Notes: generated by a model not told the origin, from the letters alone. A stretch of DNA of 64,000 nucleotides from Selaginella moellendorffii (GCF_000143415.4 NW_003314342.1:654852-718851); one strand, 5' to 3'; shown: positions 27,850-59,727, counted from the stretch's first letter. Program-made: numbers and translations.

Positions 27850-30800
27850 TATGAAACACAAAATCCCTAGGCCTCAAAGTGGAGCTGAAAGGGCACCATG
27901 TGGTAGTGGCCGAAGCGAAAGCCAAACAAGCGTAACACGTTTGGACTAAAAGCTCCGACTTGAAAAGGTCGAGAGTGGGAGTGGAACTCCCAACGAAGTG
28001 CTCGAGGAACAAACACAAAGTGAAAGAAAAGTGAGTCTCTAGAAAAGGGACACAAGAGGACCGACACATGACACGTGGAAGGACCTGAGATGGAGTCCAA
28101 GATGGAGTCTAAGATGGATCCAAGATGGATCCGAAATGGAGTTTGAGATGGAGTCCAAGATGGAGTCTGAGAAATGGGACTTATGGAGGTTGTGAATGAG
28201 ACTCCTCCAAGTGGTTGGAGGTGCGGTTAAGTGACTAAAGTAGAATGGAAAAATTAGTCGATTACAACTTGGTATCGGAGCTGTTCCTTAGTCCGACTTT
28301 TATTGATGCTTAAGTATATCACCACTTGTATGGGAATTAGAAGGTCCTAGGTATAGACCTATCCTCGAGGAGGAGCATGTCAAGAGGACATGGCTCTCCC
28401 CTCAAGTTCATGTGTGAACTTGTGCGCAATGTGGTGGATGGAAAAGGCCAGTAAGGGAACGACTTTGGGATCTTGGGAACAATATAAAGGTTTCCTCAGA
28501 AAGTTGAGGATGTGATCCAGATGAGCGTTTGATGCAGTAAACGGGCTAATGTAGTTGTGGTAAACAACTATAGTTAGGATCACGGGAAAGATGCAAACTC
28601 CAAAACGATAATGGAGTCACAAGATTACCCTCATATAGTTGAGGTTGGTGCTCATGAATTTGAGACTGGAATTGATGATCGTGGGAGGTCAAATACGGTA
28701 GAGGACACAAGTCCTTGAAATGGTAGCCGGGGCTACCTTTAATAAATGTTGGAACAACCCAAGGAGTTGGGGGTGTACTTAGAGGATGAGTTGGTATTCT
28801 CATCACATGGATAAGTGGTCATAAAGGGCAAAAGGTTGCCCCTAGAGAACAAATCAAGTGTCGGAGTAACACTTGCAAAGATGGTCCTTGTGAGTAGGAC
28901 ATGAATACAAGGAGTTGTATTCCAGTGAGCTAGCACCTCAAAAGTAAGACCTTATGGGTCGTCGGATTAGCAAAATCCAAAAAGTCTGATGACTCTAATA
29001 GAGTTAAGGAATAATCCTAAGGGATCGAGAAGCATTTGGACTGAGGTGCGTGGTGCCCCATGAAGGATGGGGAGGATCTTGAGATCCAAGTATGAAAACA
29101 GTGTGTATCTCATTGATGGCAAAATGTGCCACACTAAAGTCGTGGGAAAGGTGTTCCCAGAAGAAGCAACTTTAGTGCAGAGTTGTGTGCGAACACTATG
29201 GTGTAATGCTAATGAATAGTTGGCATGAGAAACGACTGGGTTGGTCTTGGCAAAGACTTAGACACAAGTGCAAAGTGTCATAAAGGCAGACTCATGGAGC
29301 CGATGGTGTGGGGACACCAAATGGGCCAAGGTGTGATACCTTCAGGTTATGTTGATGAGTTCATGAGAACCCTTTGCCAAGGGAATCCCAATGGAAATGA
29401 GAATGGCATAGCCTAAGCTGGAAAGCATGTGGTAGAGTGTGGTGACCCGGATAATGATGGAGGTGTGGAAGCATCAGCAATGAGTTGTGGGACTTGACAA
29501 CTATGAGACAACTAAGCAGGAGGTGTAGGTAATTGGTTAAACGGGTAGAAAGTAGCTACCCAAGACTTCTTAAAGTTAAATATACCCTTATTGGGGATAA
29601 GTTGCTTATGTTGCGATATAATAAGTCAATGTCGTAAAAGGAAATGCTCATTGTCAAAGAGGCCATCATTGGGACACCCAAACACTCTAGAACACCAAGA
29701 GGTGGTATTTAGTGTTGCAAGGGCAATAAATAAGGCCCAAGGGACAAAGTCCCTGGCGAACGATGGATAGAAGGTGCTATCCAAACGTCCAAGATTGCAA
29801 AGATGGGAGAAATTTCTCTACCCGAATTGGACAAAGCCAAAAAGGGATTTTGGCAAAGGTAATGATGGGCATATAAAGGCATATGAGTAGCAACGTTAAT
29901 CCCGGTGTGTGGGATTACAAGGTGAGCATACTCGGATTGAGGAACCACTCCCGAGGTTATCGGGTAGATTCATCCCTATGAATACTTGCAAAGGCATGGT
30001 AGAAAGTGCAAAGCCATCCTCCTAGTCTGAAGGAGAATAATTGAAGGAAACATATGAGGCCAAAAAGCAAAGTAGTAAAGGGATGGAACCGAACCATAGG
30101 AATCGACAGGCATAACTGAGGGTGGTTATGTAAATTGGGAGTGGAGAATCAAGAGGGTGCTCAAGGATGTTGTTACTAGCAACCGCGATGCCATGGAGAG
30201 TCTAAAATGGGGAATTATCCATATTAGACCATATGGTGACTAGGGAGCTTGCAAAGGAGAAGCCTTAGTGAGTTAAGGAATAGAGTTCCTTGAAGGTTCC
30301 CAAAGACAATTTTAGGTAGATAAGTACTTAGAAAGCCAAGTGTAAATGATTCTTAAAGTGCGTGAAATCAGAGTGGCGCAGCAGAAGCGTGATCTTGAAG
30401 CTAGCTATGAGGCGAGGCTATCAAGGTTGGGGAAATTGTTCCCGAGTGTTCAAAGAGAGGGCTTTGAACAAAAGGCGATGGTTAAAGACTTTCACGCTTA
30501 TGCATGAACCATGTTACAGTAGCCGAATGACTTGCTAAGCGAGATTGGCGAGTCAGGGGAATAAATCCCCTAGTTGAAGGTGCTAACTTCAAAAGGGGTG
30601 GCCCATGGGGCCGAGCATGGAGGATATGCAAGATCACAAACTTGTCAAGCGAGAGGACTTGGTAGTGTAGAGGAACTAGGTTCCTAAGCTGTGATCTATA
30701 GCATGCTTTAAGTACATGTTGGTGCACCGGCGTGGGGAGTCACGCTAGGCATCCTGTGTGATGCCGTCCGTAGATGCATATACGGAGGTTGGGTTCGAGT

Positions 30801-33800
30801 CCCGACCCTCTAGTGCTTGGGTTCGAGTCCCAACTCACTAGGGCGTGGTGATGGTTTGGAATATGAGGATATTCATATTTCAGTGGTTATGGACTCTTAG
30901 TGGGGAGATTGGTTTGGGCACACCGCCAAGCGAGGGATGCCTTGGAGTTGTGATACACAGTTAGATTGCTTAGTATGAAAGCTCAGCATATCTAACTTGA
31001 ACACTTTGGTGCAAGGGGGCACCAAGGACGAGGTGATTGAGATGGGGACACTCAATCTTAGTTGCTATGGACCCTTGGCTGGAAGGGCTGGCTTGGGCGC
31101 ACCACCAAGCGTGGGGGATGCCCCTGGGTCATAGTCAACAACTTAAAAGTCTAGGAGACCTAGTACCTATTGGCAAACCTATTAAGGTGCCGAGGTTAGA
31201 TCACTAAGTGATCTTATGGTTAAAAACAAGGATAAGGTCCTTGTGAGGTTAAGGGATAAAGTTCTAAGTTCAAAGTGTTGATTGGAACTATTGATGATAG
31301 TGTGGCTTGGTCAAGGTGATCAAGTGGGAAGGACACCTAAGGGAAATGAGATATGTTAATGCAATGACATAGTGAGTCTGAGGAAAGTAGTCTCTATAAA
31401 AGACCCATGGGAGGGTCACAAAGTTGGGCCGTAAATAGACCCCATAGCAGAAGATGCTAAAGAGACGTACTAGGGGTGAACACCCTCCGGACTTGGCAAA
31501 GGAGAGTCTTTGCTATAGAACCGAAAGGATACCTCGAAAATGGAGGTAGCGATCCTATGTTGCTAGATGCAACAATCAAGGATAGGAGCAAAAGACTAGT
31601 GGTTAAGTAAAGAGCCATAGAAACCATGGGAAAGAATCTAAATGGCAAAGTTAGGCCAAGAACACTAAGGTGTTGGGTGCTAACAGATTGTGGGAAATGC
31701 AAATGTGTTTCCAAGGATGGATTCCCAATTGCTTCAATTTGGCGAAAGTGGAAGCTCTAGGGGAGGGAGCGGTAAGGTAGCCAAACACAAATTATGATAA
31801 CTGGAACTTAGTGCCAATGGTGGCACAAAATAAAAAAGAGGATGATGATGCCCTCAAGTAGAGAACTTTATAAGATGGGGAAGTGGAATTGCATAATATG
31901 TGCAATGCAAGGTGTTGGAGACATCCAAGAAATTGACTTCGAGAAGTCAAAGTTAAAAGTTCCAAAGTGCAGGGGTTATATCGATGGAAAGCGAGACTAC
32001 TTGAGAATGAGTAGTGGGATTGAGTTAGAGAAGGTATCTTTAACAACTTTAGCGAGAACTAAACTAGTAAAAGGAGAGAACCACCACAAGTGGTTCAATC
32101 AGTCTTTAAGTTGGAGAGATTATACTCCTTAAAGGATGAGGAAGGCATGGTGAGCCTTCAATATCAAACCATTGACGAATATTGGTGAGGGGCCAAAGAT
32201 GGAAATGGTAATACAAGTTGGTATTACTTTATAAAATAGTTTATCGTTCGATGAGGACATCGAACTTTGTCTATGGGTGGTGGAGTTGTGAGACACAAAA
32301 TCCCTAGGCCCCAAAGTGGAGCTGAAAGGGTGCCACGTGGTAGTGGCCGAAGCAAAAGCCAAACGAGCGTAACACATTTGGACTAAAAGCTCCAACTTGA
32401 AAAGGTCAAGAGTGGGAGTGGAACTCCCAACAAAGTGCTCGAGAAACATGCACGAAGTGAAAAAAAAGTGAGTTTCTAGAAAAGGGACACAAGAGGACCG
32501 ACACATGACACGTGGAAGGACCCGAGATGAAGTCCAAGATGGAGTCCGAGATGGATCCGAGATAGATCTGAGATGGAGTCCGAGATGGATCCGAGATGGA
32601 GTCCGAGATGGAGTCCGAGATGGACCCGAGATGGAGTCCGAGATGGAGTCCGAGATGGACCCGAGATGGAGTCCAAGATGGAGTCTGGGATGGACCTGAG
32701 ATAGAGTCCGAGATGGAGTCCGAGATGGACCCGAGATGGAGTCCGAGATGGAGTCTAGATGGAGTCCGAGATGGACTCGAGATGGAGCCTGAGATAGACC
32801 CGAGATGGAGTCTGAGATGGACCCAAGATGGAGTCCGAAGTCGAGACCGAGACCAAGACCGAGATTGAGACCGAGATCGGGACCGAGACTGAGACTGAGA
32901 CCGAGGCTGAGTCCGAGTCCGAGTCCGAGTCCGAGTTTGAGTCTGAGAGGGTGAAAGCCCAAAGCGCTCGTCTCCCAAACCCTGGGGGGTTTGGTGAGCT
33001 CCAAAAGTATAGTAAGGGGGAGGACTGCAGTGGAGCCAGTTTGGCCAGGAAAGGCTAGTTTGGCCTAGGAAGACTATATCCAATGTTGGGTGATGAGTTG
33101 CCCATTGGGAAGTCCAAAACTAGAGTGAACATGGACCGACAAACGGGGTAGCTTAGTGAAGTGTTCAAGAGCCGGCTCTAGTTCCCCCGGGAGATCAACT
33201 GGCCGATGCTCCCAGTCTAAGTGTGGGTGGCACTACCTACTTGGATACCTGGTGTGGCTCAACGAAACCTCACTCTAAGCCCATGGCTAGAGCACCCAAA
33301 GGCAGAAGGCGAGGAAAGTACCCAGGAGGCCCACGTAGGGCCACGGTGTTCCGAAATGTTGCCCCAAAGTCCCAAACTATGGAAAGGAAGAGGAGTAGCC
33401 CTCTGGTGTGGTGACTAAGGAGACAGTCACACAGTGAGGAAGTCCCAGAGGACAGTTGGACTTAGTGGTCGGGCCTGTGGGCCTTGATCTAGTGGCAGTG
33501 TTAGCGAACACGACCATGGACAAAAAGGGACTTGATGGGGACTGGAAAAGAGATATTGGGGAAGGCTATTCCCCATGTCTGTGACATCCTAAGGATGCTA
33601 AGGAGTGGATCTGGGATGATCACTCATGGACGGATGGTCTAGCCTTTGAGAGACGGGATTGTGATGCAGGTGGCATTAGTCCACCGGTGTGACCAGGGTG
33701 AATGGGCATGGCCTTAGCATAACGGGCCGATATATCGGTGGTACCTTGGGGTGTCGGTCATGGGATCTGATATGTGGAGCACTTGGACTAAGTGTAGAGG

Positions 33801-33942
33801 TTGAATGGCATGGATGCCATTCTCGGGGCTAGCAAGCCCCAAGTCTTGAATGGGACTTATGGAGGTTGTGAATGAGACTCCTCCAAGTAGTCGGAGGTGT
33901 GGTTAAGTGACTAAAGTAGAATGGAAAAATTAGTCGCTTACA
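27850..33942 (+). mobile_element. Family B non-autonomous LTR element (LARD-like), copy B1; 5' LTR 27850-28266 (internally deleted), 3' LTR 32287-33942
   Basis: Perfect TSD TCTTG; PBS TGGTATCGGAGC; PPT GGGTGGTGGAG; 4.0-kb internal region with no gag/pol motif; inserted in gag of element A. Confidence 0.92.
32520..32946 (+). repeat. LTR minisatellite of family B: GAGATGGAGTCC (12) / GAGATGGACCC (11) array followed by GAGACC/GAGTCC hexamers; also at ~28085-28170, 36685-37150, 42465-42765, 52325-52835, 58170-58645
   Basis: Tandem units are directly visible in all six LTRs. Confidence 0.95.
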
Positions 33943-36402
33943 TCTTGGTGCTAGTTCTTTCGTTCGACCGAAGTTCTTTTGTGGGAATCCTAGGGATGAT
34001 GTGTACCATTGGTTCAATCATTTCACGGTGATTGCCACATATCATTCTTGGGATGATACTCCACGTTTGTGTGAGTTTCCCACGTGTCTCCAAGGATGGT
34101 GTTGCAATGGTACAATGGTTTGAGCACAACCACTCGTGGGGATTGGAGTGTTCTCCTGGGCGTCTTCAAACGCGCCTTCGAACATGCTGACAACTGTGAT
34201 GATGCCTTCCAACAATTGCATCATCTTTGCCAAGGGCCATCTAAGTCAGTGATGCAATTTGGCTTTTATTTCCGAAGTCTTTTACTTCGTGTGGAGCCAC
34301 ATATGTCGAAGCGGATCAAGCTAGGAATGTTGTGGCTAGCACTTCGTTAAGATCTTGTCAGACTTGTGCATGCACTTGCTCCCGCCACCCTTGACGATGC
34401 TCTTTGCTTGGTATAACGTTATGAGACGTCGCCTCTTCCACTTCTTGCTGCCCGTCCTTCAACTCTCCTTCTTATAGGTGATAGTCCTATTCTAATGGAG
34501 GTTGATGTTGCTGCTGCTCGAGTCCAAGGACAAGGGCGAGGACATGGTCATGGCCGTGATGTTCGCTGCTGGGCGTGTGATAAAGTTGGTCATACTTATC
34601 GGCGCTATCGGCGTTTTCCGATTGGCGACCTCCATTTCTTGGGTGGAGACTTTGGCGTCATCAATGTCCTATTGATGCTGCTGCAGTGGAAGGTTTGGAC
34701 ACTGAGATGCATCCGGGAAACGAGGAGTCACGCGAGTAACAGAGGGACCTTGCGTGAATAAATCAGTGACCTCTCCATCTTAATTTCGGGAGTATCATCA
34801 AGGGGTTCACTCGACACCGGTTCATCTAGTGTTACTTTCCAAGCTCATTTTTATAACAAGAGGTCTCCTATTATTCTCTCTTTGTTGGTTGATACAAGTT
34901 CGAGTTTATCTTTTATTGCTCAACTTGTTCTCTGTCGTGGAGTAGTTCACCTCTGCTAGTTGTAACATATGGCTTATATATGCAATGGGATGATGCTGAC
35001 TAGGCACACTCAGGCTTTCTTGCATTAGCACACCTCCAAGACTAATATCAAAAGCATCTACGCGCAAAATAAAAAGGTCAAGTGTAGTCAGGATATGCCA
35101 AAATCAGAGGAGTCGTCAATAGCACTTTGAGATCCACAAATGCCCACTCACAATCTGAAGACCAGATGAGAGATGATATTGATGACTTCAGCAATGCTCG
35201 CAATGGTGCAGTGTAATCAGAAAGATGATCCACAAAACGACCGAGATACTACACTTTGCCCAGGAAGCGCTGCACATCATTCACACACTTCTGAGTAGGG
35301 AACTTTAGAACAGCCACAAGTTTGTCATGATCAACTTGCAAACCTTTACGAGAAATACGGTACCCAAGATAAGTCGTGTCCTTGGACCCAAACACGCATT
35401 TTGACCACTTCAGCTTTAAACCAACGTCCTATAGCTAATCTAACACTTTACACACATCACGAATATGCTCGTCCCACGTCCCCTCTGAGTGAATTAAGAC
35501 ATCATCAATGAAGTTAATAGTCACCTTTGGCATATCACAAAGAACCTCGTCCATCATCTGCTAAAAAGTTGCTAGAGCATTGTTTAAACCAAATAGCATC
35601 ATCAAGAATTCATATAAACCAAACAGTGCATAAAAAACAGTCTTAGGAATATCTTCTTCGGCTAACGATACTTGCTAGTACCCAAAAGCAAGATCTAGCT
35701 TGGTGAACCAATGACTTCGCCCTAAACGATTCAAGAGATCAGCAGTGTGAGGAAGAGGGTACACATCTAGGATCATCACTTCATTTAACGGACCATAGTC
35801 AATGTAAAAACAAATACTCCCATCAGGCTTCGTCACAAGATGAGGTTCATATGCCCAAGGACTCCACGACTTCTGAATAACACCCTTCTCCAACGTCTCC
35901 TTGATGTTTGCACGTAAAATCTTGATCTCCTTGGGTAACCGATGACGAACAGGAACCTTGATTTGGACGAGCATCCCCAGTTGGAATGGGATGACGTGTG
36001 GCAATCTTGGCCCTAGACAATAAGTCAAATTCAAAGAGATTAGAATACTCCTTCATGAGCCGGTCAACCGCTGCAACACAAAGACTGTCGGAGGGATCAA
36101 AAAAGGGAAGAGCAGAACAAGACAAAAACATAGGAGGAAATAGTGGGGGAACAAAATTAATGGAAGTAGAGGTAAAAGTAGAGGGACGAAGGGGTACGGA
36201 AGTGAGAGGAATGAATGAAACATAAGGAAGTATGAGACAAGGGGGAGAAGCCTCAAAGTCACACTTGGCATGATTGCACTGCAACCAATCCATACTAAGA
36301 ATGAGGTCAAAAGTTTGACTCAGCACCACCCATAATGACTGCAACTCAAGCTCAAGATCACCTACACGCACAACCAGGTCTGCCTCATCCCGTGCACATC
36401 CA

Positions 36403-39400
36403 TATGAGACACAAAATCCCTAGGCCCCAAAGTGGAGCCGAAAGGGTGCCACGTGGTAGTGGCCGAAGCGAAAGCCAAATGAGCGTAACACGTTTGGACT
36501 AAAAGTTCCGACTTGAAAAGGTCGAGAGTGGGAGTGGAACTCCCAATGATGTGCTCGAGGAATGAGCACGAAGCGAGCAATAAGCGAGGCTCCAAAAAGG
36601 GACCCAAAAGGACCAACACATGACACATGGAAGTGTCTGAGATGGACCCGGGTTGGAGTCTGAAGTGGAGTTCGAGAAAGACCCTGAGATGGAGTCCGAG
36701 ATGGAGTCTGAGATGGACCCAAGATGGAGTTCGAGATGGAGTCCGAGATGGACCCGAGATGGAGTCCGAGATGGACCCAAGATGGAGTTCGAGATGGAGT
36801 CCGAGATGGACCCGAGATGGACCCGAGATGGAGTCCGAGATGGACCCGAGATGGACCCGAGATGGAGTCCGAGATGGACCCGAGATGGAGTCCGAGATGG
36901 AGTCCGAGATGGACCTGAGATGGAGTCCAAGATGGACCCGAGATGGAGTCCGAGATGGAGTCCGAGATGGACCCGAGATGGAGTCCGAAGTCAAGACTGA
37001 GACCAGGACCGAGACCGAGATCGAGACCGGGACCGGGACCGAGACTGGGACCGGGACCGAGACCGAGACCGAGACCGAGGCCGAGTCCGAGTTCGAGTCC
37101 GAGTCCGAGTCCGAGTTCGAGTTCGAGTCTGAGTTCGAGATCGAGTCTGAGAGGGTGAAAGCCCAAAGCGTTCGGCTCCCAGACCCTGGGGGGTTTAGTG
37201 AGCTCCAAAAGTATAGTAAGGGGGAGGACTGTAATGGAGCCAGTTTGGCCAGGAAAGGCCAGTTTGGCCCAGGAAGGCCGGACCCAGTGTTGGGTGATGA
37301 GCTGCCCACTGGGAATTCCAAGACTAGAGTGAACACGGACCGACAAGCGGGGTAGCTTGGTGAAGTGTTCAAGAGCTGGCTCTAGTTCGCCCGGGAGATC
37401 GACTGGCCGATGCTCCCAGTCCAAGTGTGGGTGGCATTACCTACTTGGATACCTGTCGTGGCTCAACGGAACCTTGCTCTAAGCCCATGGCTAGAGCACC
37501 TAAAGGCGAAAGGCGGGGAGAGTACCCATGAGGCTTGCGTAAGGCCACGGTGTTCCGAAATGTTGTCCCAAAGTCCCAAACGGTGAAAGGGAAGAGGAGC
37601 AAACCTCTAATGCAGTGACCAAGGATACGGTCACATGGTGAGGAAGTCCCAAAGGATAGTGGGACTTAGCGGTCGGGCCTGCAGGCCTTGATCCAGTGGC
37701 AGTGTTGGCGAACACGGCCATGGACTAAAAGGGACTTAGTGGGGACTGGAAAAGAGTTGTCAAGGAAGGCTATTCCCCATGTCTGCAGACATCCTAAGGA
37801 TGGTAAGGAGTAGATCTGGGATGATCACTCATGGACAGATGGCCCAGTCTTTGAGAGACAAGACTATGATGCTGGTGGCATTAGACCACCGGTGTGACCA
37901 AGGTGAATGGGCATGGCCTTAGCGTAACAGGCCGATATGTCGGGGGTACCTTGGTGTGTCGGTCATGGTATCAGACATGTGGAGCACTTGGACCAAGTGC
38001 AAATGTGGAGTGGCATGGATGCCATTCTCGGGGCTAGCAAGCCCCAAGTCCTAATTGGGACTTATGGAGGTTGTGAATGAGAGTCCTCCATGTGGTTGGA
38101 GGTGCGATTAAGTGACTAGAGTAAAATGGAAAAATTAGTCGCTTACAACTTGGTATCGGAGCTGTTCGTTAGTCTGACTTTTATTGGTGCTCAAGTATAT
38201 CACCACTGGTGTTGGCATCAGAAGGTCCGAGGAGTGGGCTTATCCTTGAGGAGTAGCAGGTCGGGAAGACATGGCTCTCCATTACAGTTCATGTGTGAAC
38301 TTGTAGACAAGGTGGTGGATAGAAAAGGGCCAATAATGGAACAACTTTGGGATCTTGGGAACAGTGTAAGGTTTTTCTCATTGAGCTGAGGAGGTGATCT
38401 AGATGAGCGTTTGACTCAGCAAACTGGCTAATGTAGTTGTGGTAAACAATTATAGTTGGGATCACGGGGAAGATAGAGACTCCAAAAACAATAAAGGAGT
38501 CACAAGATTATCCTCACATAGTTGAGACTAGTGCTCATGAAGGTGAGACTGGAATGGATGACCGTGAGAGGTCAATTATGGATGAAGACACGAGTCCTTG
38601 AAGTGGTAGCCAATTTTACCTTTTATAAATGCTGGAACAAACCCAAGGAGTTGGGGGTGCGCTCAAAGGATGAGTCAATATTCTCATCATATGGACGAGT
38701 AGTCCTAAGGGGCAAAGGTAGCCCACAGAGAACAGAAAATAATAAAGTGTTAGAGTGACACTTGCAAAGACAGTCCTTATGAATACACGAAGTTGTATTC
38801 CAGTGTGCTGGCACCTCAAAAATAGGACCTTATGGGTCATTGGATTGGCAAAGTCCGAAAATGCTAGATGACTCAAGTGGAGTCAAGGGATAATCCTAAA
38901 GGATTGGTAAAAGCATTTAGACTGAGGTGTGTGGTGCCCCATGAAGGATGGGAAGGATCTTAAGACCCAAGTATGAGAATAGTAGGTATCTCATTGATGG
39001 CAGAAGGTGCCATGCTAAAGTCGTGGGAAAGAGTTTCCCGGAAGAAAACAACTTTGACACAAAGTTGTGTGTGGACTCTATAATGCAGTGCTAATGGATA
39101 ATTGGCATAAGAGACAATCATATTAGTCTTGGCAAAAAGACCTAGACACAAGTAAGAAGTGTCATAAAGGTAGGCTCCTGGAGCTGATGGTGTGGAGACA
39201 CCGAAGGTGCCAAGGTGTGCTGCCTTGAGGTCAAGTTGGCGGGTTTATGAGAACCCCTTCCAAAGGAATCCCAATGGAAATGGGAATAGCATAGCCTATG
39301 CTAAAAGGCATGCGGTTAGAGTGTGGTGACCTAGATAATGATGGAGGTGTGGAAGCATCAGCAATGAGTTGTAAGACTTGACAACTATAAGACAACTAAG

Positions 39401-42400
39401 CAAAAGGTGCAAAATAAATCATTAAACTGGTAAAAGGCAACTACCTAAGACTTCTTATTGGGATAAGGAAGTTAGATATACCCTTATGGGGGAGAAATTG
39501 TTTATATTGCGATAGTAAATCAACATCGTAAAAGGAATGCTCATTGTCAAAGAAGCCATCATTGGGACACTGAAGCACTCTGGAACACCAGGAGGTGGTG
39601 TTTGGTGTTGTGAGGGCACGGATAAGGCCCAAGGGACAAAGTTCCTAGTGAATGATGGATAGGAAGTGTTATCTAAATGTCCAAGGTTACGGAAACGGGG
39701 GAAGTCTGTCTACCTAAATAGGACAAAGCCAAAAAGGGATTTTGGCAAGGCTAGTGATGGGCATATAAAGGCCCATAAGTAGCAACGGTAATTCCAGTGT
39801 ATAAGATTACGAGGGGAGCAAACCCAAATTGAGGAACCACTCCCTAGGCTATCGGGTAGGTTCATCCCTATGAATACTTGCCAAGGCAAGGTGGAAAGTG
39901 CAAAACTATTTTCCTAGTTTGGAGGAGAATGACCAAAGGAAATGTATGAGGCCAAAAGGCAAGTAGTAAAGGGATAGAACCGAACCATGGGAATTGACAA
40001 GTATGACTAAGGGTGGTTATGCAAGTTGGGAGTGGAGAATCAAGTGGGTGCTCAAGCATGTTGTTACTAACGACTGGGATGTCATGGAGAGTCTAAAACA
40101 TGGGATTGTCCATGTTAGACTATATAACAATTGGAAAGCTTGTGAAAGGAGAGACCTTAGCAAGCTAAGGAACAGAGTTCCTTGAACGTTCCTCCTAAGT
40201 AGATAAGTACCTAGACGTCCAAGTGTAAATGGTTTATAGAGCGCGCAAGATCAGAGTGGCACAGCAGAAGCGTGGTCTTGAAACTTGCCGAGAGGCGAGG
40301 TTATCAAGGTTAGGGAAGTAGTTCCCGAGTGTTCAAAGAGAAGGCTTCGAATGAAAGTCAATGGTTAAGGACTTTCACGCTTATGCATGAACCATGTTAC
40401 GATGACCAGATGACTTGCTAAGTGAGATTGGCAAGGTGGGGGAACGAATACCCTAGTTGAAGAAGCCAACTTCAAAGGGGTGGCCCATGGGGCCGAGCAT
40501 GGAGGAGTCCATGGTTGATCACAGGCTTGTCAAGTGAGAGGACTTGGCAGTGCGGAGGAACTAAGTTCTTAAGCTGTGATCTGTAGCACACTTTAAATAT
40601 AAGTTGGTGCACCGGCGTGGAGAGTCACGCCAGGCATCTTGTGTGATGCCGTCCGTAAATGCATAGGGTTCGAGTCCCGACCCTCTAGTGCTTGGGTTCG
40701 AGTCCCAAATCACTAGGGTGTGGTGATGGTTTGGAATATGAGGACACTCATATTTCGGTGGTCATGGACTCTTAGTGGGGAGACTGGTTTGGGCACACCA
40801 CCAAGCGAGGGATGCCTCGGAGTCGTGATGCACGGTTAGATTGCTTAGTGTGAAAGCTCAGCATATCTAACTTGAACACTTTGGTGCCAGTGGCATCAAG
40901 GACGTGGTGAATGAGATGGGGACACCCAGTCTTAGTTGCCATGGACCCTTGGCCGGAAGGGCTGGCTTAGGTGCACCGCTAAATGTGGGGGATGCCCTTA
41001 GGGTCATGGTCAACAACTTAAAGGTTTGGAAGACCTAGTACCTATTGGCAAACCTGTTAAGGTGCCAAGGTTAGATCACTAAGTGATTTTATAGCAAAAA
41101 ACAAGGACAAGGTCCTTGTAAGGTTAAAGGATAAAGTTCCAAGTTCAAAGTGTTGATTAGAACTATTGATGATAGTGTGGCTTGGTCAACGTGACCAAGT
41201 GGGAGGAACACCTAAAGGAAATGAGCTATGTCAATGCGATGGCATAATAAGTCCAAGGAAAGTAGTCTCTATAAGAGATCCATCGGAGGGTCTCAAAATT
41301 GGGCTATGATAGAGCCCATGGCAGAAAATGCTAAGGAGACGTACTAGGGGTGAACACCCTCTAGACTTGGGAAAGCAAAGTCTTTGCTATGGAATTGAAA
41401 GGATACCTCGAGAATGGAGGTGACGATCTTGTGTTGCGTGGTGCAACAATCAAAGATAAGAGCAAAAGACTAGTGGCTAAGAAAAGGGCCATGGGAATCA
41501 TGGGATAGAAGCCAAATGGCAAAGCTAGTCCAAGAACACTAATGTGTTGGATGCTAACGGATTATTGGAAAGCAATATGTTTCCAAGGATAGGTTCCTAA
41601 TTGCTCCGATTTGGCGAAGGGGGAAGCTTCAAGGGATGGAGTGGTAAAGTAGCCAAATGATAGGGCCATGGACAGCCCTAGCACGAATTATGATAGCTAG
41701 AACTTAGTGCTAAGGGTGGCAGGATATCGAAGAGAGGATGATGGTGCCCGCAAATAAAGAACTTCCTAGGATGGGAAGTGGAGTTGCACCATGTGCAATG
41801 TAAGGTGTCGGAGACACCTAGGAGATTGACTGTGAGAAGTCAAAATTAAAAGGTTCCAAAGTGCAAGGGTTATATCGATGGAAAGTGAGACCACTCGAGA
41901 ATGAGTAGTGGGATTGAGTTACAGAAGGTGTCTCTAACAAGTTTAGTGAGAACTAAACCAGTAAAAAGGAGAAGACCACCACAAGTGGTCCAATCAGTCT
42001 CTAAATTGGAGAGACTACACTCCTTAGAGGATGGATAAGGCATGGTGAGGCTTCAATGTCAAACCATAGACAAATATTGGCTGAGTGCCAAGGATAGAAA
42101 TGGTAACACATGTGGGTGTTACTTTACAAAATGGTTTACCGTTCGATGAGGACATCGAACTTCGTCTATGGGTGGTGGAGTTGTGAGACACAAAATCCCT
42201 AGGCCCCAAAGTGGAACCGAAAGGGTGCCACGTGGTAGTGGCCGAAGCGAAAGCCAAATGAGCGTAACACGTTTGGACAAAAAGCTCCGACTTGAAAAGG
42301 TCGAGAGTGGGAGTGGAACTCCCAACGATGTGCTCGAGGAATGAGCACGAAGCGAGCAATAAGCGAGGCTCCAAAAAGGGACCCAAAAGGACCAACACAT

Positions 42401-45773: not shown

Positions 45774-45914
45774 TTACAAGAGAGTCATCCCATACTTGTC
45801 TATAGGCATAAGAGCGCATGCCTAGAAATCTCAAAACAAAAGAACAAAGATTTACAAGAGAGAGTCATCCAAAACTGATCTATAGGTGTATAAGTGCATA
45901 CCAAGAAATCTCAA
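45774..45914 (+). repeat. Imperfect ~75-bp tandem duplication
   Basis: atttacaagagagtcatcc..tctatagg..agaaatctcaa occurs twice. Confidence 0.6.
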
Positions 45915-46831: not shown

Positions 46832-47250
46832 AGTTATTGTTGTAGACCCTCAATGTCGCGAATGTGACTTCGGGTATTGAAAGATACTTGTCGGCTAGTC
46901 CTTACGGACACTCTCTCCTTACTGCCATGACAGCAAGAGGTTGGTACTGCTGGTTCCCTTTATGTCTCCGCCCAAGCTAGTTGAGAAACTGGTCAGCACA
47001 TGTGCACTTAGACCNNNNNNNNNNNNNNNNNNNNNNNNNNNNNNNNNNNNNNNNNNNNNNNNNNNNNNNNNNNNNNNNNNNNNNNNNNNNNNNNNNNNNN
47101 NNNNNNNNNNNNNNATAAAGGGAACCAGCAGTACTGACCTCTTGCCGTCATGGCAGTAAGGAGAGAGTGTCCGTAAGGACTAGTCGACAAGTATCTTCCA
47201 ATACCTGAAGTCACATTCGCGACACTCAAGATGCTCTACACAACATAACT
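46832..47250. repeat. Long (~130 bp) imperfect inverted repeat flanking a 100-N gap; possibly a TIR element
   Basis: 46832-46963 is the imperfect reverse complement of 47115-47250. Confidence 0.7.
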
Positions 47251-50200: not shown

Positions 50201-50622
50201 AGAGAAATGCTTCATCAAATGCCATAAACACAATATCATATTGAACCTTGACAAGTGCATTTTCTTCGTCAAATCAGGAATTCTACTTGAACATGTAGTT
50301 TCCAAAGAAGGAATCCTCATTGACAAGGAGCAAACCCTCACAATCACCAACATACAACATCCATTCGACATTTCAAGCCTTCGATCATTCCTTGGTAAGA
50401 TGGGATACCATTGAAGATTCATCAAAAACTACACCAAGATTGCAAAACCTATCACTAAACTCCTCAAGAAGAATTAAGCTTACAATTGGACTCAAGATTG
50501 TCAAAATGCCTTCATCAACCTCAAGAATTCCCTCACCCAAGCTCCAATACTTGCTCAACCAAACTGGAACAAAGACTTCAACATCCAAGTCGACACCTCC
50601 CTCAGAGTGATCCTTTTGCAAC

Positions 50623-51219: not shown

Positions 51220-52149
51220 GCAACAACAAGAAGATCATAAAGACTGACTAATCTACTATGCAAGTTGAAGACTCAACTTAACCGAAATGAACTACACTAC
51301 AACTGAAAAAAAAGCTCTAGCAATGATCTACACACTCCAAAAGTTTCATTACTACCTACTCAATAACTTCCTCCACCTTCTCAACAAAACAATCCTTACC
51401 AGCAGAATTGCACAATAGTTCTTACTACTTCAAGAACATAACTTCGAGATCATCTATAAGCCTAGAAGAGAATATGAACACCTAAGCCGCATTACAACCA
51501 ATGAACAATTGAAACATAATATAAATGACTTTCTTGACTCCAATATCCTTTGAATCCACACATCACCAACCTAGATGGACAACATCTACTACTACCTCAT
51601 AACAACAACAATACCAAGTTGATATTCAACCTTTGACAAGCGCAAGTAATTTGTCTTGAAGACAAAACCATATTCAGTCGTGGGAAGAAAATTGTACAAG
51701 GAAGAGACAACATTTTACAAAGATGTGCAAACCCAAAAGAAACACAAGATTTACTTGAAGAAGCCTACTATGGATAAGTAGGAGGGTATTTTACTGAAGA
51801 AATCACAGCTCAAAAAATTTTACAAGTAAGACTTTGGTGGCTAACACTTTGGCACAACTAAGCCAAGTTCTATAAAAAATGTGACATCTACTAGTGAACC
51901 AAGTATGCACTAAAGAAATAAACTCAAGAACTTTATCCAAAAATTCCACTCAAACCTTTTTAATGATGAGGATTCGACTTTGTTGGTCCACTTATGACAA
52001 TCTCCAAGCAAAATTAGTACATTTTAATTGCAATAGATTATATGACAAAATGGGCTGAAGCTCAACCAATAAAGACTACTACAACAAAGAACACAATAAA
52101 GTTCATTTATGAAAACATCATCACAAAATATGGCTTACCTTGAGAACTC

Positions 52150-55100
52150 TGTGAAACACAAAATCCTTAGGCCCCAAAGTGGAGCCGGAAAGGGTGCCAC
52201 GTGCTAGTGGTCGAAGCGAAAGCCAAACGAGCATAACACGTTTGGACTAAAAGCTCCGACTTGGAAGGTCGAGAGCGGGAGTGGAACTCCCAACAAAGTG
52301 CTCGAAGAGCAAGCACGAGGCGGACCCGAAATGGAGTCCGATATGGAGTCTGAGATGGACCCGAAGTGGAGTCCGATATAGAGCCCGATATGGAGTCCGA
52401 TATGGAGTCCGAAGTGGAGTCCGAGATGGAGTCCGATATGGAGTCCGAGATGGACCCGAAGTGGAGTCCGATATGGAGTCCGATATGGAGTCCGAGATAG
52501 AGTCTGAGATGGAGTCCGAAGTGGAGTCTGATATGGAGTCCGAGATGGAGTCCGAGATGGACCCGAGATGGATTCCGAGATGGATTCCGAGAGGGCCCCG
52601 AGATGGAGTCTGAGATGGACCCGAGATGGAGTCCGAGATGGACCCGAGATGGAGTCCGAGATGGACCCGAGATGGAGTCTGAGATGGAGTCCGAGATGGA
52701 GTCCAAGATGGAGTCCGAGATGGAACCGAGACCGGGACCGAGACCGAGACCGAGACCGAAACCGAGACCGAGTCCGAGTCCGAATCCGGGACCGAGACCG
52801 AGTCCGAGTCCGAGTCCGAGTCCGAGTCCGAGTTCGAATACTAATACAGGCAGTTGGATGAAAGCCCAAAGTGATCGTCCCCCAGGGGGGGGGGGGGCTG
52901 CAGGGGGTTCCAAAAGTATAGTAGGGAGAGTGTGGGGGTTGGAGCCCAGTGGAGCCAATTTAGCCAGGAAAGGCCAGTTTGGCCCAGGCAGGCCAGACCC
53001 AGTGTTGGGTGATGAGCTGACCACTGGGAAGTCCAAGACTAGAGTGAACATGGACCGACAAGCTGGGTAGCTTGGTGAAGTGTTCAAGAGCCGGCTCTAG
53101 TTCCCCCGGGAGATCGACTGGCCGATGCTCCCAATCCAAGTGTGGGTGGCACTACTTACTTGGATACCAAGTGTGGCTCAACGGAACCTCGCTCTAAGCC
53201 CATGGCTAGAGCACCCAAGGGCGGAAGGCGGGGAGAGTACCCAGGTGGCTCGTGTAAGGCCACGGTGTTCTGAAATGTTGTCCCAAAGGCCCAGACGGTG
53301 GAAAGGAAGAGGAGCAGTCCTCTGGGGCAGTGACCAAGGACACAGTCGTGTGGTGAGGAAGTCCCAGAGGACCGTGGGACTTAGTGGTCAGGCCTGTGGG
53401 CCTCGATCCAGTGGCAGTGTTGGCAAACACGGTCAAGGGCAGAAAGGGACTTAGTGGGGACTGACAGAGGGATATTGGGGAAGGCTATTCCCCTTGTCAG
53501 TGGGCATCCTAAGGATGCTAAGGAGTGGATCTGAGATGACCACTCACAGATGGGTTGCCTAGTCTTGGAGAGCCAAGATTGTGATGCAAGTGGTATTGGA
53601 CTACCAGTGTGGCAAAGGGGATTGGGCATGGCCTTAGCGTAACAAGCTGCCATGTCGGTGGTACCTTTGAGTGTCAGTTATGGGATTGGACACGTGGAGC
53701 ACTTGGACCAAGTGCAATTGTTGAGTGGCATGGATGCCATTCTCGGGGCTAGCAAGTCCCAAGTCCTAAATTGGACTTATGGAGGTTGTGAATGAGACTC
53801 CTCCAAGTGGTCAGAGATGTGGTTAAGTGACTAAAGTAAAATGGAAAAATTAGTCGCTTACAACTTGGTATCGGAGCTGTTCCTTAGTCTGACTTTTATT
53901 GGTGCTCAAGTATATCACCATTGATGTTGGCATCGGAAGGTCTTAGGAGTGGGCCTATCCTTGAGGAGTAGCATGTCGAGAGGACATGGCTCTCCACTCA
54001 AGTTCATGCGTGAACTTGGGCACAATGTGGTGGATAGAAAAGGGCCAATAATAGAACGACTTTGGGATCTTGGGAACAGTATAAGGTCTCCTCAGAGAGC
54101 TGAGGATGTGATCCAAAGGAGCATTTGATGCAGCAAACGGGCTAACGTAGTTGTGATAAACAACTATAGTTGGGATCACGGGAAAGATGTAGACTCCAAA
54201 ACAATAAAGAAGTCACAAGATTATCCTTATATAGTTGAGGTTGGTGCTCATGAATGTGAGACCAGAGGTAATGACCATGGGAGGTCAAATACGGAAGAGG
54301 ACTCAAGTCCTTGAAATGGTAGCCGGGGCTACCTTTAATAAATGCTGGAACAACCCAAAGAGTTGGGGGGTGTACTTAGAGATGAGTTGGTATTCTCATC
54401 ACATGGACAAGTAGTCCTAAGGGGCAAAGGTTGCCCCTAGAGAACAAAATCAAGTGTCAGAGTAACACTTGTGAAAATAGTCCTTTTGAGTAGGACAGGA
54501 ATGCAAGAAGTGTATTCCAGTGAGCTAGTGCCTCACAAGTAGGACCTTACGGGTCTGTGGATTAACCAAGTCCAAAACTGCTGGATGACTCAAATAGAGT
54601 TAAGGAATGGTCCTAAAAGGACTGATGGAAGCATTTGGACTGAGGTGGGTGGTACCCCACGAAGGATGGGGGGGGATCATAGGATCCAAGGATGAGAACA
54701 GAGGGTATTTCATCGATGGCAAAATATGCCATGCTAAAGTCGTGGGAAAGGTGTTCCCAAAAAGAAAACAACTTTGACACAAAGTTGTGTGTGACCTCTA
54801 TGGTGTAGTGCTAACAGATGGTTGGTATGAGAAAGAGCAGTATTGGTCTTGGCAAAGACTTAAACACAAAGAAGAAGTGTCATAGAGGTAGGCTCGTGAA
54901 GCCGATGGTGTGGAGACACCAAATGTGCCAAAGTGTGATACCTTGAGGCTATGTTGGTGGGTTCATGAGAACCCCTTACCAAAGGAATCCCAATGGAAAT
55001 GGGAATGGCATAGCCTAAGCGGCAGAGCATGCAGTTGGAGTGTGGTGACCCAGATAATGATGGAGGTGTGGAAGCACCAGCAATGAGTTGTAGGACTTGA

Positions 55101-58100
55101 CAACTATGAGGCAATTAAGCAAGAGGTGCAAAATAATTGGTTAAACGAGTAGAAGGTAGCTACCCAAGCCTTCTTAATGGCATAGGGAAGTTGGACGTAC
55201 CCTTACGGGGGATATGTTGCGATATAGTAAGTCAATGTCATAAAAGGAAATACTCATTGTCAAGGAAGCCATTATTGGGACACCCGAACACTCTAGAACA
55301 CTAGGAGGTGATGTTTGATGTCGCAAGGGTAATAAATAAGGCCCAAGGGACTAAGTCCCTAGCGAATGATGGATAGAAGGTGCTATCCAAATGTCCAAAG
55401 GTGGCGGAAACAGGAGAAGACTGTCTACTCGAATTGGACAAAGCCAAAAATGGAATTTTGGCAAGGCTAGCGATGGGCATGCAAAGGCCCGTAAGGAACA
55501 ATGTAATCCCGGTGTGTGGGATTATAGGGTGAGCATACCTGGATTGAGGAACCACTCCCTAGGCTATTGGGTAAGTTCATCCCTAAGAATACTTGTTAAG
55601 GCATGATAGAAAGTGCAAATCTATCCTCCTGGTCTGAAAGAGAATGACCAAAAGAAAGGTGTGAAGCCAAAAGCAAGAAGTAAGGGGATAGAACCGAACC
55701 ATAGGAATCGAAGGGCATAACCAAGGTTGGTTATGCCAACTGGGAGTGGAGAATCAAGTGGGGGCTCGAGGGTGTTGCCGCTAGCAACCGTGATGCCATG
55801 GAGAGTCTAAAATATGGAATTATCCATGTTAGACTATATGGTAATTGGAAAGCTTGCAAAAAGAGAGGCCTTAGCAAGCTAAGGGACAAAGTTCCTTCAA
55901 GTTCCCAAAGAGGATTCTAGGTAGCTTAGTACCTAGAAAGGCCAAGCGTAAATGGTTCAAGGAATGCGCGAAATCGGAGTGGCACAGCAGAAGCGTGGTC
56001 TTGAAGCTTGCCATGAGGCAAGGCTATCAAGGTTAGGGAAGTAGTTCCCGAGTGTTCAAAGAGAAGGCTTTGAACGAAAGTCGATGATCAAGGGCTTTCA
56101 CACTTGTGCAGAAACCATGTTACAGTGGTCGGAGGACTTGCCAAAGCGAGATTGGCAAGTCAGGGGAACAAATACCCTAGTTGAAAGTGATAACTTCAAA
56201 AAGGGTGGGCCATGGGGCCAAGCATGGAGGAGTCCATGCATGATCACAGGCTTGTCAAGTGAGAAGACTTGGCAGTGGGGAGGAACTAGGTTCCTAAGCT
56301 GTGATTTATAGCGCGCTTTGAGTATAAGTTGGTGCACCAGTGTGGGGAGTCACGCCAGGCATCCTAGGTGATGCCGTCCGTAGATGCATATACGGAGGTT
56401 GGGTTCGAGTCCCGACCCTCTAGTGCTTGGGTTCGAGTCCCAAATCACTAGGGCGTGGTGATGGTTTGGAATATGAGGACACTCATATTTCGGTGGTCAT
56501 GGACTGTCAATGAGGAGATTGGCTTGGGCACATCGCTAAGTGGGGGATGCCCCGGAGTCGTGAGGCACGGTTAGATTGCTTAGTGTGGCTCAGCATATCT
56601 AACTTGAACACTTTGGTGCCAGTGGCATCAAGGACGTGGTGAATGAGATGGGGACACCCAGTCTCAGTTGCTATGGACCCTTGGCCAGAAGGGCTGGCTT
56701 GGGCGCACCGCCAAGTGTGGGGGATGCCCCCGGGGTCGTAGTTAACAAGCTAAAGGTCTGGAAGATCTAGTACCTATTGGCAAACCTGTTAAGGTGTCGA
56801 GGTGAGATCACTAGGTGATCTTGTGGCTAAATAAGGACAAAGTCCTTGTTTGGGCTAAGGAATAAGGTTCCTAGTTCAAAGTGTTGATTTGAACTATTGA
56901 TGATGGTGTGGCTTGGTCAAGGTGACCAAGTGGGAAAAGCACCTTAGGGAAATGAGCTATGTCATTGCGATGGCATAGTGTGTCCAAAGAAAGTAGTCTC
57001 TAAAGAGACCCGTGGGAGGGTCATAAAGTTGGGTCGTGGATAAGCCCACAGCAGAAGATGCTAAAGAGACTTACTAGGGGTGAACACCCTAGTCTTGGCA
57101 AAGCAGAGCCTTTGTTATAGAATCAAAAGAATACCTCAAGGAGGGAGGTAGAGATTCAGTGTTGCTTGGTGCAACAATCAACGGATAGGAGCAAAAGATG
57201 AGTGGCCAAGATAGAGCCGTGGAATCCCTTGGAAGGAATCCAAGTGGCAAAGTTAGGCGAGGAACACTAATGTGTTGGACACTAACAAATTGCGGGAAAG
57301 GAAGTGTGTTTCCAAGGATGGATTCCGAATTGCTCCGATTTGGCGAAAGTGGAAGCTCCAAGGGAGGGAGCGGTAAGGTAGCCAAATGATAGGGCCATGG
57401 ACAGCCCTAGCACAAAGTATGATAAATGGAACTTAGTGCCCAAGGTGGCACAAAATAGAAGAGAGGATGATGGTGCCCTCAAGTAATGAACTTCCTAAGT
57501 GGAGTTGCACAATCTGTGCAATGCAAGGTGTTGGAGACACTTAGGAAATTGACTTCCAAAAGTCAAAAAAGTAAAAGTTCCAAGGTGCAAACGTTCAATA
57601 GATGGAAATTGTGACTACTCAAGAAGGAGTAGTGGGATTGACTTAGAGAAGGGTCTCTAAGAGGTTTAGTAAGAACTAAACCAATAAAAGGAGAGAACCA
57701 CTACATGTGGTCCAATCAGTCTCTAAGTTGGAGAGACTACCCTCCTTAGAGGATAGGCAAGGCATGGTGAACCTTTGGTGTCAAACCATTGAGGAATATG
57801 CAAAAGGCATGGTGAGCCTTCAATGTCAAACCATTGACGAATATGGAGAAAGCATGGTGAGCCTTCAATGTCAAACCATTGACAAATATTAGCTAGGTGC
57901 CAAGGATGGAAATGGTAATGCATGCGGGTGTTACTTTATAAAATGGTTTACCGTTCGATGAGGACATCAAACTTCGTCTATGGGTGGTGGAGTTGTGAGA
58001 CACAAAATCCCTAGGCCCCAAAGTGGAGCCGGAAAGGGTGCCACGTGGTAGTGGCCGAAGCGAAAGCCAAACAAGCATAACATGTTTGGACTAAAAGCTC

Positions 58101-59727
58101 CGACTTGGAAGGTCGAGAGCGGGAATGGAACTCCCAACAAAGTGCTTGAAGAGCAAGCACGAGGCGAACCCGAAATGGAGTCCGATATGGAGTCTGAGAT
58201 GGACCCGAAGTGGAGTCCGATATGGAGTCCGATATGGAATCCGAAGTGGAGTCTGAGATGGAGTCCGATATGGAGTCCGAGATGGACCCGAAGTGGAGTC
58301 CGATATGGAGTCCGATATGGAGTCCGAGATGGAGTCCGAGATGGACCCGAAGTGGAGTCCGATATGGAGTCCGAGATAGAGTCCGAGATGGAGTCCGAAG
58401 TGGAGTCTGATATGGAGTCCAAGATGGAGTCCGAAATGGACCTGAGATAGAGTCCGAGATGGAGTCCGAGATGGACCCGAGATGGAGTCCGAGATGGACC
58501 CGAGATGGAGTCCGAGATGGACCCAAGATGGAGTCTGAGATGGACCCGAGATGGAGTCCGAGATGGAGTCCGAGATGGAACCAAGACCGAGACCGAGTCC
58601 GAGTCCGAATCCGAATCCGAGACCGACTCCGACTCCGAGTTCGAATACTAATACAGGCAGTTGGGTGAAAGCCCAAAGCGATCGTCCCCCACGGGGGGGG
58701 GGNNNNNNNNNNNNNNNNNNNNNNNNNNNNNNNNNNNNNNNNNNNNNNNNNNNNNNNNNNNNNNNNNNNNNNNNNNNNNNNNNNNNNNNNNNNNNNNNNN
58801 NNNNNNNNNNNNNNNNNNNNNNNNNNNNNNNNNNNNNNNNNNNNNNNNNNNNNNNNNNNNNNNNNNNNNNNNNNNNNNNNNNNNNNNNNNNNNNNNNNNN
58901 NNNNNNNNNNNNNNNNNNNNNNNNNNNNNNNNNNNNNNNNNNNNNNNNNNNNNNNNNNNNNNNNNNNNNNNNNNNNNNNNNNNNNNNNNNNNNNNNNNNN
59001 NNNNNNNNNNNNNNNNNNNNNNNNNNNNNNNNNNNNNNNNNNNNNNNNNNNNNNNNNNNNNNNNNNNNNNNNNNNNNNNNNNNNNNNNNNNNNNNNNNNN
59101 NNNNNNNNNNNNNNNNNNNNNNNNNNNNNNNNNNNNNNNNNNNNNNNNNNNNNNNNNNNNNNNNNNNNNNNNNNNNNNNNNNNNNNNNNNNNNNNNNNNN
59201 NNNNNNNNNNNNNNNNNNNNNNNNNNNNNNNNNNNNNNNNNNNNNNNNNNNNNNNNNNNNNNNNNNNNNNNNNNNNNNNNNNNNNNNNNNNNNNNNNNNN
59301 NNNNNNNNNNNNNNNNNNNNNNNNNNNNNNNNNNNNNNNNNNNNNNNNNNNNNNNNNNNNNNNNNNNNNNNNNNNNNNNNNNNNNNNNNNNNNNNNNTGA
59401 GATGACCACTCACAGATGGGTTGCCTAGTCTTGGAGAGCCAAGATTGTGATGCAAGTGGTATTGGACTACCAGTGTGGCAAAGGGGATTGGGCATGGCCT
59501 TAGCGTAACAAGCTGCCATGTCGGTGGTACGTTTGAGTGTCGGTCATGGGATCGGACACGTGGAGCACTTGGACCAAGTGCAATTGTTGAGTGGCATGGA
59601 TGCCATTCTCGGGGCTAGCAAGTCCCAGTCCTGAATTGGACTTATGGAGGTTGTGAATGAGACTCCTCCAAGTGGTCGGAGGTGTGGTTAAGTGACTAAA
59701 GTAGAATGGAAAAATTAGTTGCTTACA
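52150..59727 (+). mobile_element. Family B copy B3; LTRs 52150-53862 and 57994-59727 (the latter spans an N gap)
   Basis: Perfect TSD AACTC; same PBS and PPT; splits the integrase core (YGLP..|LITDQGTHF) of element C. Confidence 0.92.

Follow-up and report, generated by a model that had tools for sequence, protein, structure and literature searches.

In a 64,000-nucleotide (nt) stretch of the Selaginella moellendorffii genome (NW_003314342.1, positions 654852 to 718851; hereafter the window, with coordinates counted from its first letter), three copies of one family of long terminal repeat (LTR) elements carry a non-coding interior of about 4 kb that is packed with hairpins. The element is very probably a non-autonomous LTR retrotransposon of the large retrotransposon derivative (LARD) type. 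Its hairpin domain, ~4.9 kb in all, takes in the entire ~4-kb interior together with the final ~850 nt of the LTR, and the structure observed there is a chain of local hairpins with stems of 6 to 10 bp. That the excess of hairpins is real we regard as virtually certain. As an overall reading, we consider it moderately probable that this LARD-type family is mobilized in trans and that its hairpin chain is constrained as plus-strand RNA.

Excess and extent of the hairpins

Perfect hairpins, defined as Watson-Crick stems of at least 6 bp with loops of 3 to 12 nt, were counted against a null of dinucleotide shuffles. The interiors of copy 1 (28267-32286), copy 2 (38148-42181) and copy 3 (53863-57993), all on the plus strand, contained 48, 46 and 49 of them, respectively, versus 7 to 8 in the shuffles (z of 14 to 15), a 6- to 7-fold excess. 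The seven flanking blocks analyzed rendered 1 to 1.9 times the shuffle level. The hairpins had stems of 6 to 10 bp, loops mostly of 3 to 8 nt and a median spacing of 63 to 76 nt. When other geometries were counted as controls (mirror, parallel-complement and direct repeats), 8 to 12 were found per interior, and shuffles confined to blocks of 20 or 40 nt yielded 6 to 8 hairpins per interior. Thus, the excess is specific to reverse-complement pairing and is not explained by patchy composition. The state shared by the copies, taken column by column as the state present in two of the three (the same rule was used to polarize substitutions), would contain ~65 hairpins, roughly one per 60 nt.

Folding energies were in agreement with the counts. 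The mean minimum free energy (MFE) z scores of the three interiors, obtained in 150-nt windows against dinucleotide shuffles, were -1.46, -1.70 and -1.94 for the plus strand (-1.78 and -1.83 for the minus strand of copies 1 and 2), versus -0.1 to -0.7 for the flanks (67 windows). The comparison of MFE with dinucleotide shuffles had been named beforehand as a check by a first-pass annotation of the window, which proposed a selected, giant RNA fold, and the interiors did stand apart from the flanks. A 518-nt stretch of copy 3 reached a fold z of -6.47, and none of 100 shuffles was as stable.

Hairpin density was uniform through the interior (4 to 9 per 500 nt), and the domain continued into the LTR, whose last ~850 nt contained 5 to 11 hairpins versus ~1.8 expected, a number reached by 0 to 3 of 100 shuffles. 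In the 5' LTRs, this part contained 9 hairpins in copy 2 (37298-38147) and 11 in copy 3 (its final 850 nt), versus 2.0 expected in both cases. In the first half of the LTR, hairpins were at chance level, which places the boundary of the domain in mid-LTR. The extent suggested in the first-pass annotation, the R-U5 region plus the interior (~5 kb), is close to the ~4.9 kb measured here.

The upstream half of the LTR is likewise part of the genomic RNA and is reverse-transcribed. Its paucity of hairpins therefore argues against any process that adds hairpins to whatever passes through the reverse transcriptase. This bears on the main rival explanation, according to which the hairpins are a functionless by-product of mutation, generated by template switching (of the reverse transcriptase, or of a DNA polymerase at quasi-palindromes) in an interior free of coding constraint. 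Perfect RNA hairpins are known to arise by template switching (PMC8794818); however, a 6- to 7-fold excess would demand a very high switching rate, and the first half of the LTR, as non-coding as the interior, remained at chance. We judge this explanation to be the less probable one, although it retains an appreciable share of our expectation.

Constraint on stems and strand asymmetry

For the comparison of divergence, hairpins were defined in one copy and differences were counted between the other two. Stems diverged by 11.1%, other positions by 14.8% and loops by 21.4% (p = 3e-5 and 1e-10), and singletons per site followed the same order (0.155, 0.219 and 0.324, respectively). The earlier statement that stems persist while loops vary was therefore confirmed.

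Within the interiors, loops diverged faster (21%) than linkers (15%); candidate causes are a higher mutability of exposed G/A-rich loops, the rewriting of loops by template switching, and diversifying selection.

The substitutions within stems depended on the strand. Outside stems, C>T and G>A changes occurred at equal rates (0.223 and 0.226 per site, respectively). In stems, C>T, which turns a G-C pair into G·U, was kept at 0.228, whereas G>A, which turns G-C into A·C, was depressed to 0.138 (p = 0.005). Stem changes yielding G·U numbered 60, versus 36 to 37 yielding A·C (p of about 0.02). Similarly, stems of at least 8 bp with at least one G·U pair numbered 28, 22 and 26 in copies 1, 2 and 3, versus 12 to 13 in shuffles (0 of 200 shuffles reached those values), whereas stems with A·C, equivalent to G·U on the minus strand, numbered 8, 10 and 12, versus 7 to 9 in shuffles, which is chance level. 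The G·U excess is thus confined to the plus sense and points to pairing in plus-strand RNA, given that palindromes acting at the DNA level, or neutral decay, predict symmetry. The plus strand is that of the genomic transcript, as judged from the polarity of the primer-binding site (PBS) and the polypurine tract (PPT). On the basis of these sequence comparisons, constraint on the hairpins at the RNA level appears probable.

Template switching gives no reason to expect G·T to be favored over A·C, and it does not account for a depression of G>A but not of C>T that is restricted to stems, with both rates equal outside them. Furthermore, the copy-specific hairpin gains at 31035, 39287 and 57228 altered both arms of the stem, which is impossible by a single arm-copying event. 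Taken as a class, copy-specific gains were unconvincing as evidence and were set aside (17 hairpins versus roughly 10 expected from a rough equilibrium argument).

The same asymmetry bears on the possibility that the palindromes act as DNA, as protein-binding or epigenetic-targeting motifs of the kind suggested by Sireviruses. Plant LTR retrotransposons are known to harbor palindrome clusters able to form hairpins (PMC4728375): the LTRs of maize Sireviruses (Copia) contain a palindrome-rich region with hairpin potential, in which the arms are more conserved than the center (Bousios et al. 2016, PMC4728375). The Selaginella family resembles them in that short palindromes able to fold into hairpins are clustered within the element, with arms that vary less than the center, and the symmetry in energy of its inverted repeats between strands would fit a function in DNA. 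However, in Sireviruses, which are autonomous, a single 17-nt motif recurs at four loci within the upstream, cis-regulatory half of the LTR, whereas here ~83 different and unrelated hairpin sequences, with no single repeated motif, occupy the final ~850 nt of the LTR together with the non-coding interior, and their G·U asymmetry is specific to plus-strand RNA. A DNA-level role is accordingly very improbable, and it found little support, as did the two explanations considered below (a decayed coding region and a captured structured RNA).

Evidence against selection on the hairpins

Several observations weigh against the hairpins being selected as RNA. Individual hairpins are poorly conserved: among the 83 hairpin sites on the three-copy alignment, only 12 were perfect in all three copies, 32 being perfect in two and 39 in one. 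This 12:32:39 retention fits simple decay in which about half of the hairpins are kept per lineage, and it would imply roughly 95 to 100 perfect hairpins in the common ancestor. In 39 windows of 300 nt, the excess folding energy added up to about -570 kcal/mol on one strand and -600 kcal/mol on the other and was thus equal on both, as would be expected of mostly Watson-Crick inverted repeats, which a DNA-level process could also produce. Stems evolved only ~25 to 30% more slowly than linkers. Stems with a single mismatch were too few to be informative. Compensatory change was not above chance in the three copies, with 2 both-side cells versus 3.3 expected, and RNAalifold returned both-sided changes in 4 of 175 pairs. 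With only three copies, which share a common ancestry, the counts are not fully independent. Finally, purine-rich unpaired bases had to be discarded as a design feature of the whole fold (75% versus 74% in shuffles).

Part of this evidence is what template switching would be expected to leave: overwhelmingly Watson-Crick stems whose excess stability is equal on both strands, a high turnover of hairpins, no excess of compensatory double changes, and hypervariable loops. Against it stand the plus-sense G·U bias and the mid-LTR boundary described above.

Compensatory covariation had been expected from the first-pass annotation, and this expectation failed in the three copies, in which a single double change restored a Watson-Crick pair (G-C to C-G at 57642/57661). 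The accompanying caveat that deamination could be responsible was justified, several of the examples offered as covariation being GC to AT changes at deamination-prone sites. For its part, the selected giant fold was upheld in that a dense hairpin chain, slower stems and a plus-strand signature were found; it was not upheld as a global fold, only local hairpins being seen. Since individual hairpins turn over, selection seems to act on their density and not on each one. Thus, constraint on the hairpin chain as plus-strand RNA would involve selection that is weak per hairpin and that may act on hairpin density.

Loops and individual hairpins

The apical loops of the perfect hairpins were 70 to 73% purine, with C accounting for only 8 to 10%. 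All-purine loops numbered 34 of 143, whereas the linkers would lead one to expect 13.6 ± 3.4, and both AGG and GAG were enriched 2-fold. The plus strand as a whole is 60% purine. As shuffles matched the unpaired purine content, the general purine richness is a matter of composition, and the enrichment is limited to the apical loops of perfect hairpins.

Nearly all of the hairpins cited as examples in the first-pass annotation were recovered: GATGAG..CTCATC at 28785, 38669 and 54381, TTGGTGC..GCACCAA at 31006, CCTCAG-agag-CTGAGG at 54089, GGCGTG..CACGCC at 40614, GGCATC..GATGCC at 30748, 40633 and 56358, and AATATGAG-gaca-CTCATATT at 40735 and 56470. The TAATCCT/TGGTCCT pair (38891 and 54608) lay outside the limit of the search, which required a loop of at least 3 nt. 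The stem proposed at the LTR end, TAAGTGACTA/TAGTCGCTTA, was conserved in all LTR copies in the LTR alignment; in copy 2 (38108-38145, plus strand) it lies at the U5 end, directly upstream of the PBS, and comprises 9 Watson-Crick pairs plus one U·G around an 18-nt loop.

Two tandem 28-nt units that form hairpins resembling a tRNA T arm are conserved in all copies (30789-30848, 40666-40721 and 56399-56458, plus strand). Each unit contains a canonical tRNA T loop (TTCGAGT) closed by G-C and a perfect consensus of the RNA polymerase III (Pol III) box B, GGTTCGAGTCC; the second one is stacked upon a stem of 6 bp, in the manner of an acceptor/T-arm minihelix. Neither ARAGORN nor Rfam called a tRNA in these units, which could be the remnant of an insert derived from a tRNA or from a short interspersed nuclear element (SINE), or a mimic. 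They are one reason to consider that the interior might be a captured structured RNA of cellular or viral origin (rRNA, tRNA or SINE arrays, or another long structured RNA), and G·U pairs and purine-rich loops are also typical of structured cellular RNAs. However, no Rfam family was found at the gathering threshold across the window, nor in the interior at E values up to 1; ARAGORN called no tRNA, and the interior contained no internal repeat families longer than 28 nt. Capture of this kind is thus highly unlikely. The Rfam scan had been proposed with the first-pass annotation; the sub-threshold matches that it returned fell in the LTRs only. MIR2933 accounted for two of these, within the minisatellite, and SCARNA18 for one, at 53003-53063.

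Another hairpin, TCCGTA-gATGCATa-TACGGA (30767-30786 and 56377-56396), exposes in its 8-nt loop the 6-nt palindrome ATGCAT flanked by purines; in copy 2, its 3' arm was removed by a 10-nt deletion. The palindromic loop is reminiscent, by analogy, of the kissing-loop dimerization sites of retroviruses.

Coding capacity

The interiors showed no coding signal. The longest plus-strand stop-free stretch in any of them was 106 amino acids (aa), and none of the 31 plus-strand pieces of at least 50 aa obtained from them gave a significant Pfam match. A match to DUF4219, the N terminus of copia Gag, at 39970-40182 (E = 0.056) and a zinc-finger-like match (E = 0.1) were rejected, both being at chance level given the number of queries. 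Protein database searches with the interior open reading frames (ORFs) at 57092-57406 (minus strand) and 31812-32129 (plus strand) yielded no match. The absence of retroelement protein motifs noted previously was thus corroborated.

These results are difficult to reconcile with an interior that is a decayed coding region, either gag-pol or a captured gene, in which the hairpins would be incidental. A plus strand with 60% purine, as is often seen in the coding strands of retroelements, and the weak DUF4219 match would be compatible with such an origin. However, in addition to the lack of open stretches and of database matches, the indels between copies were mostly of 1 to 2 nt and the reading frame was not preserved, and a coding history would not yield a 6- to 7-fold excess of hairpins. 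We consider a decayed coding region extremely unlikely.

Anatomy of the three copies

The three elements were resolved by self-BLAST together with their terminal sequences and the LTR/PBS junction, and all lie on the plus strand. Copy 1 occupies 27850-33942, copy 2 36403-43765 and copy 3 52150-59727. Their target site duplications (TSDs) are identical 5-mers in copy 1 (TCTTG, 27845-27849 and 33943-33947) and copy 3 (AACTC, 52145-52149 and 59728-59732), whereas those of copy 2 agree in 4 of their 5 bases (ATCCA at 36398-36402 and ATGCA at 43766-43770). Three TSD-flanked copies with PBS and PPT were precisely what had been reported, and the interior lengths given for them (4020, 4034 and 4131 bp) were exactly reproduced.

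The elements measure 6.1 to 7.6 kb and their LTRs 1.6 to 1.75 kb, with the exception of the 5' LTR of copy 1 (27850-28266), which is internally deleted: ~1.24 kb of an LTR of ~1.66 kb has been lost, leaving 417 nt made up of ~320 nt from its start and ~95 nt from its end. The remaining LTRs are the 3' LTR of copy 1 (32287-33942, with TG..CA ends), the 5' and 3' LTRs of copy 2 (36403-38147 and 42182-43765) and those of copy 3 (52150-53862 and 57994-59727). LTRs start with TG, or with TA in two copies; TGAGACAC or TGAAACAC comes next, and the terminal sequence is GCTTACA.

The PBS, TGGTATCGGAGC, is located 3 nt downstream of the 5' LTR in all three copies (28270-28281, 38151-38162 and 53866-53877). 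It is of the initiator tRNA-Met type, with one G for A, and we take it to be a match to the plant initiator tRNA-Met. The exact 25-nt LTR/PBS junction occurred three times, versus zero expected. The PPT, GGGTGGTGGAG, lies next to the 3' LTR at its upstream side (32275-32285, 42170-42180 and 57982-57992).

In every LTR, a minisatellite makes up the upstream half: 24 to 38 copies of a 12-nt unit, CCGAGATGGAGT, and then CCGAGA/CCGAGT repeats of 6 nt (tracts at 32522-32948, 36635-37151, 42414-42757, 52326-52837 and 58170-58644). Its copy number varies even between the two LTRs of a single element, and it yields long spurious ORFs on both strands.

The interiors are colinear end to end, as previously described, and share 85 to 86% pairwise identity, about three-quarters of the mismatches being transitions. 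A tandem repeat present only in copy 3 (57759-57889, a 45-nt unit repeated 2.9 times) explains most of its extra ~100 bp and contributes additional hairpins (TCAATG-tcaaac-CATTGA, twice). When compared over their final, non-repetitive 850 nt, LTRs from the same element were 96.0% identical in copy 2 and 97.3% in copy 3, and identity between elements was 86 to 88%. Most of the divergence between copies therefore predates insertion and arose in replicating lineages, the stage at which selection on RNA can act. The three copies are old insertions of one family.

Assembly gaps and surroundings

The window contains two runs of N, at 47015-47114 and 58703-59397. The latter falls within the 3' LTR of copy 3, and the sequence on either side of it is colinear with the 5' LTR, where the matching stretch measures 636 nt (versus 695 N); this LTR thus appears to be continuous, and the interior of copy 3 is unaffected. 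The former lies outside the three copies and has no bearing on them, between the arms of an inverted repeat (46854-46963 and 47115-47224) with 110-nt arms that are 95% complementary, the right arm beginning immediately after the N run. Either a genuine fold-back structure, or one resembling a miniature inverted-repeat transposable element (MITE), broke the assembly here, or the repeat is an assembly artifact. The window is nuclear DNA, and the protein encoded at 18142-19524 has an exact counterpart on scaffold GL377646.1 of S. moellendorffii assembly GCA_000143415.2. The gene neighborhood upstream of the elements (6934-7866, 9907-10593, 18142-19524, 21697-22437 on the minus strand, and 23674-24711) includes several PPR/PPR-DYW ORFs, an S1-domain gene and a remnant of a PIF/Harbinger transposase (DDE_Tnp_4/Plant_tran), and an alpha-L-fucosidase with an F5/8 type C domain lies on the minus strand among the upstream genes.

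Comparison with known elements

The assignment to LARDs follows from an internal domain devoid of ORFs, an element longer than 4 kb with a multi-kilobase interior, and conservation of the interior sequence among copies; the first-pass proposal of a non-coding, LARD-like LTR element is thus endorsed by the anatomy and by the lack of coding signal. Known LARDs, such as Sukkula of barley and those of other Triticeae, are similar in having LTR, PBS and PPT around a conserved multi-kilobase interior without gag/pol and, by analogy, in a presumed dependence on a helper. Their LTRs reportedly measure ~4.4 kb in Sukkula (1.6 to 1.75 kb in the Selaginella element). As they are elements of grasses and the present family is from a lycophyte, no relation in sequence is expected. 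The internal domains of LARDs have been reported to specify a well-conserved RNA secondary structure, according to a statement in PMC7215508 citing Kalendar et al. 2004. In the literature searched, neither the hairpin density, nor the plus-sense G·U asymmetry, nor the mid-LTR boundary was found described for LARDs.

Other non-autonomous LTR elements that rely on a helper, such as miniature terminal-repeat retrotransposons (TRIMs), Cassandra, Helenus/Ajax (PMC10886601) and retrozymes (PMC9695139), are much smaller. Some TRIM-type elements and retrozymes carry sequences derived from small RNAs or ribozymes (PMC10886601, PMC9695139), and these 5S, tRNA or hammerhead sequences are in the LTRs, whereas the Selaginella elements reach 6.1 to 7.6 kb and have their tRNA-like hairpins in the interior. 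TRIM, Cassandra and Helenus were rejected on the basis of LTRs of 1.6 to 1.75 kb, elements of more than 6 kb and the lack of 5S or tRNA matches in the LTRs (Rfam and ARAGORN). A retrozyme was rejected because no hammerhead ribozyme was matched in Rfam at the gathering threshold, nor at E values up to 1 on copy 3, and a terminal-repeat retrotransposon with a GAG domain (TR-GAG) was rejected because ORF and Pfam data revealed no single Gag ORF.

Possible function and significance

In the mechanism that we propose, the plus-strand transcript would be packaged by Gag supplied in trans from an autonomous helper, reverse transcription would be primed by a tRNA at the PBS and carried out by the reverse transcriptase of the helper, and the helper integrase would insert the product, generating the 5-bp TSD. 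Within the 64-kb window, no autonomous element that shares the LTR ends or the PBS was found. The hairpin chain, with its exposed G/A-rich loops, would act in cis by offering many binding sites for the Gag/nucleocapsid of the helper; it would drive dimerization and packaging and stabilize the genome-length RNA, and the parasite would thereby compete for helper particles.

Single-stranded purine loops are Gag-binding packaging determinants in retroviruses, as in the case of the purine loop of mouse mammary tumor virus (MMTV) (PMC8096270). The packaging and dimerization signals of retroviruses are similar in exposing purines in stem-loops near the PBS; recognition by Gag is known for retroviruses and would apply here by analogy. 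They comprise a handful of hairpins within a leader some hundreds of nucleotides long, whereas the Selaginella chain extends over ~4.9 kb. A Gag-binding function of the chain is thus put forward tentatively. Still more speculatively, the ~4.9-kb chain could be an evolved array of purine-loop stem-loops that bind Gag/nucleocapsid, that is, a packaging signal multiplied 65 to 100 times that out-competes the helper and whose density is selected. If true, this would represent a cis-acting architecture of retroelement RNA not described so far.

Non-coding LTR elements must carry, as RNA alone, every signal by which the proteins of another element choose, package and copy them. The family described here gives an unusually clean, measurable signal, in the form of hairpins in 6- to 7-fold excess, an abrupt onset midway along the LTR and a plus-strand bias. 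With it, selection on RNA structure in a LARD becomes directly testable, and the family offers a test case for telling selected RNA hairpins from those generated by template switching. Should the hairpins prove ordinary, the elements would still constitute a well-delimited LARD-type family in a lycophyte.

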